A DNA stretch of 64,000 bases from Bacillus subtilis subsp. subtilis str. 168 (GTDB lineage Bacteria > Bacillota > Bacilli > Bacillales > Bacillaceae). The notes under the pieces are model-generated. The model was given only the letters and a program-made list of their open reading frames with translations, had not been told where the DNA came from and did no database searches. The first letter of the stretch is position 1. Each line of letters begins with the position of its first letter. Made by a program: the position numbers and the translations under genes. Positions 36,240 through 38,669 of the stretch are shown piece after piece. Location of the stretch: NCBI RefSeq assembly GCF_000009045.1, contig NC_000964.3:372001-436000 (forward strand), in the 5' to 3' direction.

Positions 36240-36887
36240 TTAGTGTACAGGCGGAGATGCTTTCACTGCGGCTGTCCGCCTTGCCACAGCATAATTCAGC
36301 AACTGGATTGACTGGGGCAATGAAAAACGCAAAATAAGTCCGGTGAGGATGGCGGTCAAAATGGTGCCAAAACCGATCGGTCCGCCCATGCCCCATGCCG
36401 CAAACAAAATGGTTAATTCCATGCCGTTCCGCACCCATTGCACATTCCAGCCGGTTTTTTCTGTAATCAGCATCATCAGTGAATCACGCGGCCCCGCGCC
36501 AAGGCCTGCTGATACATAAACACCGACGCCGTAACCAATCAGCACCACGCCTAGAGAGAAGACGATGATCGAGCCTGTGTAGGTCGAGAGGGCAGGCAGA
36601 ATGAAATTGAAAAAATCTATAAATACACCAATGAGCACCATATTCAGGAGGGCACCAATTTTCGGCCAAGCTCTCGTAAACAATGACGTGAATCCGACGA
36701 TGAGCGCTCCAATAATGATGGACCACTGGCCGACGGTAAGCCCGAAGTGCTGAAACAGGCTGTAATGAAATGCATCCCACGGACTAATGCCGAGTGCTTT
36801 TCCTTCTATCGTCAGGGATACACCAAAAGCCAAAATGATCAAACCGGCAAAATAAAATGTCCAGCGCAGAACAAGTTCTTGCTTCAC
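36240..36887 (-). CDS. yczE: Integral membrane protein (YczE/YitT-like)
   Basis: Hydrophobic 215 aa with GISPWD and GAGPRD motifs; directly upstream of sfp. Confidence 0.88.
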   Translation of the reverse strand: MKQELVLRWTFYFAGLIILAFGVSLTIEGKALGISPWDAFHYSLFQHFGLTVGQWSIIIGALIVGFTSLFTRAWPKIGALLNMVLIGVFIDFFNFILPALSTYTGSIIVFSLGVVLIGYGVGVYVSAGLGAGPRDSLMMLITEKTGWNVQWVRNGMELTILFAAWGMGGPIGFGTILTAILTGLILRFSLPQSIQLLNYAVARRTAAVKASPPVH

Positions 36888-36972
36888 GTGAGGTCCCTTC
36901 TTTCGTAAAAATCAGTCGATTGTCATTGTAGCACATCTGACAGAAGGGCGGAATAGGCGAAAGGGGCTCAAC

Positions 36973-37004
36973 AAAAAAACAGGGCCGCCGGAGGCGCCCT
37001 GTTT
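36973..37004 (-). terminator. Terminator hairpin at the left edge of the intergenic element (minus-strand U7 tract)
   Basis: Minus strand reads AAACAGGGCGCC-TCC-GGCGGCCCTGTTTTTTT. Confidence 0.75.
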
Positions 37005-37188
37005 CAGCGTGTTGGCAAACCCTTGCATTCGTTGTCAGGCCTGTGCTTCGGTGCTCACGAATTTAACATTAGCTGTGCTCCAATGCTCGCCCTTCCTAGA
37101 CTTCAAAGGTTTTCAATCACGCTGAAAATCACAAAATCCTAAAACGAATATCGTTTTAGGATTTTGTCAATAATCTGAAACAGGGCGC
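36994..37188. repeat. ~195-bp non-coding palindromic element (MITE/REP-like; probably the multicopy B. subtilis intergenic repeat)
   Basis: Perfect 14-bp terminal inverted repeats (36994-37007 / 37175-37188), inner imperfect ~23-bp inverted repeats (about 37002-37024 / 37105-37127) and a perfect 17-bp hairpin (37131-37167). Multicopy status is recollection only. Confidence 0.65.
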
Positions 37189-37207
37189 TGACGCTCTGTT
37201 TTTCTTA

Positions 37208-37951
37208 TTACAGCGGGTTCAAAATCCGGTTTAAGAACCGCTGTGTCCGTTCTTCTTTTGGTGCGGAGAAAATTTGCTCCGGCGGTCCCTGCTCCACGAT
37301 AACGCCGCCGTCGATGAAGATGACTTCATCCGCAACCTCCTGCGCGAACTTGATTTCGTGGGTCACGACGACCATGGTCCAGCCTTCATTGGCCAAGTCC
37401 TTGATAACCTTCAGCACCTCTCCGACAAGCTCGGGATCAAGCGCTGAGGTCGGTTCGTCAAACAGCATGAGCTCAGGCTGTATCGCCAGTGCGCGGGCGA
37501 TGCCGACGCGCTGCTGCTGGCCGCCGGAAAGCTGGAACGGATATAAATCCATTTTGTCCTTCAATCCGACTTTATCAAGAAGCTGAATCGCTTCTTTTCT
37601 GACTTCCTCTTTGTTCCGTTTTTGCACCTGAACAGGGCCCTCCATCACGTTTTCGAGGGCTGTGCGGTGCGGGAACAGGTGATACGCCTGAAACACCATT
37701 CCGGATTTTCGGCGAAGCTTTAGGATATCCGCCTGTTTCACCTTTTTGGAGAAATCGATGGAGAAATCATCAAATGCAAGCTCTCCGCGATTCGGGATCT
37801 CCAGAGCGTTCAGGCAGCGGAGCAGCGTCGTTTTCCCTGAACCTGAAGGCCCAAGTATGGCGATGACTTTTCCTTTTTCAATCTTCATATCTATCTTTTT
37901 TAAAATTTCATTTTCACCGAATGATTTGTTTAATCCTTTAACGGTAAGCAT
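37208..37951 (-). CDS. tcyC: Cystine ABC transporter ATPase (247 aa)
   Basis: Walker A GPSGSGKT, signature [15 protein letters not shown]. Start reset to ATG 37951 after SD AAGGAGG. Confidence 0.93.
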
Positions 37952-37964
37952 ACTCGGAACCTCC

Positions 37965-38669
37965 TTATTTGGCCACGTAGCGGTCAAGACGCCGTTCGAT
38001 GACATGCTGGACGAGTGAGAGCAGGAAGCAGATAATCCAATAAATAAAGGCTGCTTCAATATAGATCACTAAAATTTGATCAAGATTCCGCGCGCCGATT
38101 TCCTGGGCTTTTCTGAACAGCTCAGCGACCAGAATTTGAGAGGCGAGGGATGTATCTTTAATCAGGCTGATAAAGGTATTGGATAATGGCGGGATCGACA
38201 CACGAAACGCCTGCGGCAAAATGACGCGGAACAGCGTTTTTTGATGTGTCATGCCAATTGTGTAGCCGGCTTCCCATTGCCCTTTCGGCACGGATAAAAT
38301 AGATGCCCGAATGATTTCAGATGCATAGGCGCCGACGTTTAATGAAAAGGCGATAACTGCGCTTGGAAATGGATCTAATGTGACGTTAAAGGCCGGGAAC
38401 AGATAGAAAATGATGAACAATTGAACGAGAAGAGGAGTGCCGCGTATTGCGGATACGTATACGCTGAACACCCATCTCAAAGGTCTCACTTTCGACATTC
38501 TGGCAAGCGCCGTAATCAGCGCCAGGATCATTCCGAATATAAAGGAAAGAATCGTAAGGGGAATCGTATAGTAGATTCCCCCTGAAAGTATCGGCCAGAA
38601 TGACTGCTGCACCAGATCCCACGGGATCGCCGTGCCAAGCGTCAATGCCGGCAGATTATTTAGAAACAT
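37965..38669 (-). CDS. tcyB: Cystine ABC transporter permease
   Basis: RGTPLLVQL and GQWEAG (EAA-like) motifs of polar amino-acid permeases. Confidence 0.93.

Follow-up and report, generated by a model that had tools for sequence, protein, structure and literature searches.

The window analysed here is a stretch of 64,000 nucleotides, corresponding to positions 372001–436000 of the single 4,215,606-bp contig of Bacillus subtilis 168. It includes a spacer of 320 bp between two ORFs on the minus strand (coordinates are those of the window unless genome positions are indicated). The 283-aa ORF at 37208–38059 (minus strand), which we take to be tcyC following the first-pass annotation, has orthologues in all 49 genomes of the genus. 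Its stop codon abuts the element described here, and its terminator is the insertion target. The 215-aa ORF at 36240–36887 (minus strand), named yczE in the same annotation, lies downstream on the same strand, and its 5' region is untouched by the insertion. A 173-bp element occupies the nucleotides 37005–37177 (plus strand). It starts with CAG, ends with CTG, and is located between two copies of the tcyC terminator hairpin. In more than 60 copies, the flanking direct repeats stop at these boundaries of the family alignment, and the segment between them is missing from the empty-site alleles.

The outermost feature on the left is an A-tract (36973–36979), which reads U7 on the minus strand, the transcribed strand of tcyC. 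The same A-run precedes the single hairpin in relatives with an empty site. The left copy of the target-site duplication (36977–37004, 28 bp) represents the tcyC terminator hairpin in its original form. Its sequence, loop included, differs at one loop base only from the single hairpin of the empty-site alleles L051 and L058, and it folds at −18.3 kcal/mol on the plus strand (z −3.3). The right copy (37178–37201, 24 bp) has the same outer stem, with a remodelled loop and a total length 4 nt below that of the left copy. It folds at −14.4 kcal/mol on the plus strand (z −4.6) and is flagged as terminator-like on this strand by a terminator scan. The T-tract of the original terminator (37199–37203) adjoins the hairpin without a break in the empty-site alleles. 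Both flanking hairpins have the GC-rich stem-loop and U-tract of putative intrinsic (rho-independent) terminators.

On the minus strand, the hairpin distal to tcyC folds at −19.5 kcal/mol and is followed by U7, while the proximal one folds at −9.4 kcal/mol and is followed only by UUUC. A tcyC transcript would meet the weakened proximal hairpin, pass through the element in the antisense direction, and end at the original hairpin with U7. Under this model the element is probably a part of a longer tcyC 3' end.

All symmetries described in the first-pass annotation (14-bp arms, an inner imperfect repeat, a 17-bp hairpin, and the flanking hairpins) are present in the spacer. The perfect 14-bp arms are at 36994–37007 and 37175–37188, and they can be extended to 26 nt at 85% complementarity. 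They had been described as terminal inverted repeats. The arms do exist, but they are composite: only three bases (CAG and CTG) come from the element, and the other 11 bases are the arm of the duplicated target hairpin. The terminal inverted repeats of the element itself are around 19 bp in length and imperfect. The left one (37005–37023, plus strand) begins with CAGCGTGTTGGCAAA, and the right one (37159–37177, plus strand) begins, as the reverse complement, with CAGATTATTGACAAA. The family consensus is CAGCGTGTCGACAAA for the left end and CAGATTGTTGACAAAAT (reverse complement) for the right end. These repeats are kept across 32 aligned copies, as is characteristic of MITEs.

The interior of the element has two further symmetries. 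A repeat search finds an imperfect inverted repeat of 29 nt (79%) at 37002–37030 and 37099–37127. The latter (plus strand) is an inner inverted copy of the left end, and together with the former it closes a core stem of about 125 nt. Next to the core, a subterminal AT-rich 17-bp hairpin (37131–37167, plus strand) with perfect arms at 37131–37147 and 37151–37167 extends into the inner portion of the right terminal repeat. Its folding z-score is −10.6 against shuffled controls. When the entire 173-nt element is folded as DNA, z is −5.3, and none of 200 shuffles folds equally well. No ORF of at least 40 aa in the ORF list falls within 37005–37177, in agreement with the earlier statement that the element is non-coding. 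The small size and the lack of any coding capacity are also typical of MITEs.

A search of the whole B. subtilis 168 genome finds 10 copies and one 56-nt fragment, which bears out the number of about ten copies given in the first-pass annotation. The copies are at the genome positions 318953, 409001 (the window copy), 514776, 687858, 736143, 737370, 3107022, 3236249, 3926487, and 4141502, and all of them are intergenic. There are two size classes. The copies at 318953 and 514776 constitute a long subfamily with extra ~52 nt in the middle, and the window copy belongs to the short subfamily without this insert. In an alignment of the ten copies with their flanks, homology begins at CAG (37005) and stops at CTG (37177). 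Each copy is flanked by two GC-rich hairpins, whose stems are alike on the left and right sides of one copy and unlike between copies.

Several copies have particularities. The fragment at 3774327–3774382 (minus strand) is a left end whose terminus CAGCGTGTCGACAAA is intact, with nothing recognisable beyond it. At 736143–737549, two inverted copies bracket a 303-aa ORF (736436–737347). A composite transposon was considered here and is ruled out, since the flanking hairpins of the two copies differ, which indicates separate insertions. The right part of the copy at 736143 has diverged, and its subterminal hairpin is retained via compensatory changes.

Of the 48 other species in the genus, 41 have the family. 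A single genome can contain up to about 100 first-look candidates, and more than 150 copies in the genus are among the matches listed. At the sensitivity of a DNA search, it is found in none of 42 genomes from five other genera of the family. A phage collection gives no matches to the element. In a plasmid collection, four records match, without useful annotation; two of them are labelled Stutzerimonas and one Klebsiella, and these are probably mislabelled Bacillus DNA.

Orthologous tcyC-yczE spacers were taken from genomes of the genus for comparison. The locus is occupied in five species: this genome and four sister species have the element together with a second hairpin. In seven species (L051, L053, L055, L058, and L062–L064) the site is empty, and a single bidirectional terminator is present as an A-run, a hairpin, and a T-run. 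The spacer upstream of the hairpin is nearly identical between occupied and empty alleles, with a few substitutions or 1-nt indels. The reciprocal situation is seen at nine loci of relatives, which correspond to eight sites here. They contain the element with a duplicated hairpin, and this genome has only a single hairpin. The element has thus been inserted, and the empty-site alleles with a single terminator that the first-pass annotation called for are present both at this locus and elsewhere.

Occupancy does not follow the similarity of tcyC. The closest relatives, at 95–97% identity, are empty, whereas others at 93–95% are occupied. This counts against the insertion model, as loss or recombination must be invoked. 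The pattern suggests either that recombination between the two hairpin copies removed the element precisely or that alleles were exchanged through transformation.

Other sequence changes are seen in the spacers of relatives. In L057 (G005), the element has lost around 12 bp and with them most of its right terminal repeat, and the 17-bp hairpin is joined almost directly to the right target hairpin. This deletion of the right terminal repeat implies that the copy is immobilised. In L061 (1141–1501) and L059, representing the spacer in G014 and G043, a different insertion of 240–310 bp is located between the tcyC stop codon and the same hairpin. It contains a short minus-strand ORF starting with MKKLIIS and has its own second terminator. 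The surroundings of the tcyC terminator hairpin have received insertions more than once. In L052 (G037), the same spacer has about 1.2 kb of extra DNA between yczE and tcyC, and the sequence next to the tcyC stop codon weakly matches a part of the element in reverse orientation.

The direct repeats flanking the copies are locus-specific whole hairpins. Their length, over the copies measured, is 19–31 bp with a median of 24. The duplication always comprises the stem-loop with one to four A's before it and one to four T's after it. In 30 copies from other species, the flanking hairpins are mostly perfect direct repeats, including their loops; examples are the duplications of 27 bp in L025, 31 bp in L027, and 23 bp in L028. 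The duplicates have 0–1 mismatches in many copies of relatives, versus 3–7 in this genome. As the loops differ in all copies here, templated copying of the stems without the loops was considered, and it was dropped because copies with perfectly duplicated loops are seen in relatives. At the tcyC locus, the difference between the two hairpins is a remodelling of the loop beyond simple point divergence, and this counts against the insertion model. The remodelled loop of the right copy is common to all five occupied species, which indicates that the loop change is old.

Partner insertion sequences (ISs) are present in the genus. In a close relative whose tcyC is 95% identical (L103), there is an IS of 1510 bp with a 493-aa ORF. 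The family consensus ends of the small element are identical to the ends of this IS1182-family IS at 15 of 15 positions on the left and 16 of 17 on the right. The IS has a hairpin just inside its right end, as the small element does, and is flanked by a perfect 24-bp palindromic duplication. Two other IS lineages, one represented by L081 and L087 and the other by eight further copies (L080, L082, L091, L092, L094, and L096–L098), have CAGnnTGTnGAnAAA ends in common and are located between duplicated hairpins of 16–31 bp. A hairpin analogous to the 17-bp one adjoins the right end inside the partner ISs, and all MITE and IS copies examined abut hairpins.

The transposase of L081 is assigned to the IS1182 family by NCBIfam NF033551 (476.8 bits against a cut-off of 270), and it contains the Pfam domains DUF772 (PF05598) and DDE_Tnp_1_6 (PF13751). 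The latter is matched in 41 of 49 genomes of the genus. B. subtilis 168 has no IS1182-type transposase, as neither a PF13751 match nor a match to the L081 transposase is found in its genome. The copies in this genome are therefore stranded.

A tandem arrangement is seen at L098 (213–1999; G018:C1, about 1970857–1972643). Here, a small element in the reverse orientation and a full IS1182-type IS occupy one terminator, along with three copies of one hairpin of around 19–21 bp. The three hairpin copies imply two successive insertions into the same target, one by each element. No homology between MITE and IS is detected past the terminal 15–18 bp, and the 125-nt core has no detectable IS origin. 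Derivation of the core from the interior of an IS was considered and rejected, since the similarity stops at the ends. This limited homology counts against the mobilisation model.

Based on these observations, the segment 37005–37177 is very probably a MITE mobilised in trans by the IS1182-family DDE transposases of the genus, which would target terminator hairpins and duplicate them whole. The matching ends and the identical target behaviour point to an IS1182-type enzyme. The proposal of the first-pass annotation that the element entered a terminator and rebuilt one on each side is borne out by the empty sites, the whole-hairpin duplications, and the transposase partner with matching ends. 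The same evidence agrees with its description as a MITE-like element and one copy of the old ~190-bp repeat.

The insertion can be envisaged as follows. The target recognised would be the palindrome of an intrinsic terminator, namely an A-tract, a GC stem-loop, and a T-tract, rather than a nucleotide sequence. Two strand transfers would take place at the two feet of the stem, each reaching one to four bases into the adjoining A or T tract. The entire hairpin would then be copied by gap repair, which leaves the element between two complete hairpins. The length of the duplication (19–31 bp) would be set by the size of the hairpin, with no fixed spacing, and its tracking of hairpin size implies that the target is read as a structure. 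The simplest account is that capture takes place while the target is extruded as a hairpin or cruciform, in which the two feet are side by side. Entry into the bidirectional terminator after tcyC probably took place in an ancestor that this genome has in common with four sister species. The transposase has probably been lost from this genome, and its ten copies are immobile fossils with flanking duplicates that are starting to diverge.

The conservation of the core needs another consideration. The mean column identity of the 125-nt core is 84% across groups whose tcyC DNA identity is only around 76–78%. This is beyond the expectation for a passive hitch-hiker, and counts against a simple MITE. 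Compensatory double changes are seen in 10 of 49 predicted pairs in 32 copies, seven of them in the 17-bp hairpin. In the core stem, the outer pairs are invariant in the 32 copies, and three pairs of the central stem show compensatory changes. The covariation may serve transposition, as similar end hairpins exist in the ISs, or an RNA role.

These data could also be explained if the element were, alone or in addition, a functional structured RNA or ssDNA module under selection, for which mobility would be the means of spread only. It might stabilise a 3' UTR, serve as a processing site, or act as a small RNA. We regard this as unlikely, although the many invariant core columns across distant species groups and the covariation just described are in its favour. 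The long subfamily, represented by the copies at 318953 and 514776, carries a match to the Bacillaceae-1 RNA motif (Rfam RF01690). The full match in the long copies scores 59.9 bits against the gathering score of 35, and it corresponds to the ~52-nt insert (L008:1429–1495, around 514832, and L010:1429–1495, around 319012). Judged from this position inside the element, at least some instances of the orphan Bacillaceae-1 motif appear to be transposon cargo. The window copy, however, has no RF01690 match in 36700–37500 at E up to 1. An Rfam search of this copy returns only sub-threshold chance matches (rliH at 21.7 bits versus 100, and two others), none of them near a gathering score.

Contigs assembled from an RNA library (Logan) cover the locus, which would fit an expressed element. 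Such contigs are uninformative on transcription, ends, and strand, however, and three raw-read RNA runs contained zero B. subtilis reads. Relative to the neighbouring gene, 25 copies are sense and 20 antisense. This even ratio implies that no one RNA strand is consistently expressed from host promoters, and no promoter-like site is seen inside the element. Hairpins adjoin the ends of the partner ISs too, so the covariation may be explained by transposition. The structural RNA suggested in the first-pass annotation finds backing in the covarying stems but not in Rfam, as no family matches the window copy, and this neither establishes nor removes an RNA role.

The orientation of the copies is related to replication. 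For this comparison, genomes starting at dnaA were used, the terminus was set near 0.48 of the length, and copies close to the terminus were left out. Nine of 10 copies in this genome are co-oriented with replication. In five subtilis/licheniformis-type genomes the counts are 30 of 38, 11 of 14, 12 of 15, 10 of 15, and 4 of 7. Two pumilus-type genomes, with the best 40 candidates each, show 28 of 37 and 28 of 34. The total is around 132 of 170 (about 78%), where the loci are partly orthologous and the counts were merged by hand. Eight copies, among them the window copy, adjoin a gene transcribed opposite to replication, and seven of these copies are nevertheless oriented with replication. Orientation dictated by the neighbouring gene is ruled out by these cases and by the sense/antisense ratio of 25:20. 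Around 19 of 33 transposase genes are oriented with replication, showing no clear bias.

It can be speculated that insertion is coupled to the replication fork, with the transposase capturing terminator hairpins extruded on one template strand and joining the unlike ends in a fixed polarity, and that the core is a functional module. Such coupling would account for the orientation of about 78% of copies with replication, independent of how the adjacent gene is transcribed. The core would then serve transposition or RNA rather than being filler, and the family would represent a structure-reading, fork-coupled DDE transposon whose duplication length is set by the fold of the target. We consider this a real but doubtful possibility.

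The same bias could arise if the element were an array of binding sites for a protein that organises the chromosome or takes part in replication, with selection acting on its orientation to replication. The co-direction of around 78% of the 170 copies irrespective of gene direction fits such an array. Yet the copy number ranges from 0 to about 100 between close species, the insertions are polymorphic, and the stems covary rather than keep their sequence. We know of no candidate binding protein for the element either, and a binding array is very improbable.

The first-pass annotation also considered a REPIN-like element, which would be moved by a RAYT/Y1 (HUH) transposase acting on single-stranded hairpins. 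The hairpin-rich architecture is in its favour, as is the replication-linked orientation bias, which resembles IS200/IS605-type behaviour. However, the Y1 transposase domain (PF01797) has no match in this genome, while control genomes do match, and the matching ends belong to a DDE element of the IS1182 family. HUH enzymes are not known to make long target duplications. A REPIN-like origin thus deserves hardly any credence.

A non-mobile origin, by two adjacent terminators with chance palindromes or by local tandem duplication of a terminator, could only appeal to the differing loops of the two hairpins at this locus, which make the duplication not self-evident, and it is already refuted by the clean empty sites at this and eight other loci, the more than 150 copies listed in the genus, and the perfect duplications elsewhere. 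The first-pass annotation had tied such an origin to a single copy, no empty sites, and no covariation; multiple copies, empty sites, and covariation are all found.

The MITE dependent on IS1182-type enzymes offers an explanation for an old observation. B. subtilis 168 is usually called free of insertion sequences, and its ten 190-bp repeats have been unexplained since the genome paper. The 1997 genome paper by Kunst and colleagues reportedly described a 190-bp element repeated 10 times, possibly a structural RNA. That repeat and the element described here agree in copy number, two size classes, intergenic location, and orientation to replication. It was known as a repeat only; its ends are now delimited, its target duplications and empty sites recognised, and a transposase partner matched to it. 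A literature search on the 190-bp repeat or on links between MITEs and terminators in B. subtilis found nothing relevant in the paper collection searched. If the copies are stranded MITEs, the 190-bp repeats are given an origin. Caution is also advisable in annotation: duplicated terminators, "conserved 3' UTRs", and some Bacillaceae-1 matches in the genus would be transposon cargo. B. subtilis is tractable enough to test both the duplication length, which varies with the target structure, and the link between orientation and replication.

Intrinsic terminators are known as targets of another type of mobile element. Bacterial group IIC introns home to the 3' side of intrinsic terminator stem-loops, a safe haven in which genes are spared. 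They are retroelements with a ribozyme and a reverse transcriptase, and make no target duplication. The target is thus the same kind of stem-loop, but neither ribozyme nor reverse transcriptase is present in the element described here. The Bacillus family suggests that a DDE transposon is able to use terminator hairpins as safe havens as well. As the hairpin is rebuilt on both sides, the genes on either side keep a terminator.

The Bacillaceae-1 RNA motif (RF01690; Weinberg et al. 2010, PMC2864571) is located inside the long subfamily of the element; in contrast, the window copy, belonging to the short subfamily, has no match. Bacterial MITEs of known families include Correia/NEMIS in Neisseria, bcr1 in the Bacillus cereus group, and RUP in pneumococcus (reviewed in PMC3184786). 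Like the present element, these are short repeats that lack genes, occur in many copies, and end in inverted repeats. Their insertions are polymorphic between relatives, and they have folded structures with occasional compensatory changes. Their duplications are short and fixed (TA, or 5 bp for bcr1), whereas those of the present family vary between 19 and 31 bp and correspond to a complete terminator hairpin. The data support an assignment to MITEs, a kind already known, with dependence on an IS1182-family transposase and a structure-directed target.

The closest system is IS1272 and related ISs of the IS1182 family (Wan et al. 2017, PMC5678879; Siguier et al. 2015, as cited there). The targets of IS1272 are stem-loops or inverted repeats that vary in sequence and size and usually lie directly behind genes (PMC5678879). 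The transposase family of the partner ISs (NF033551), the stem-loop target, and terminal repeats able to form stem-loops are the same. The Bacillus element differs in being a 173-bp gene-less derivative, with only 15–18 terminal bases in common with the IS. In the model for IS1272, the stem-loop is deleted if its 3' feet are attacked, whereas an attack on the 5' feet (pathway b) would duplicate all of it (PMC5678879). IS1272 is reported to replace the stem-loop with no duplication, whereas the Bacillus elements duplicate the whole stem-loop throughout, as in the hypothetical pathway b. The family therefore provides more than 60 natural cases of whole-stem-loop duplication, which is a hypothetical pathway for IS1272.
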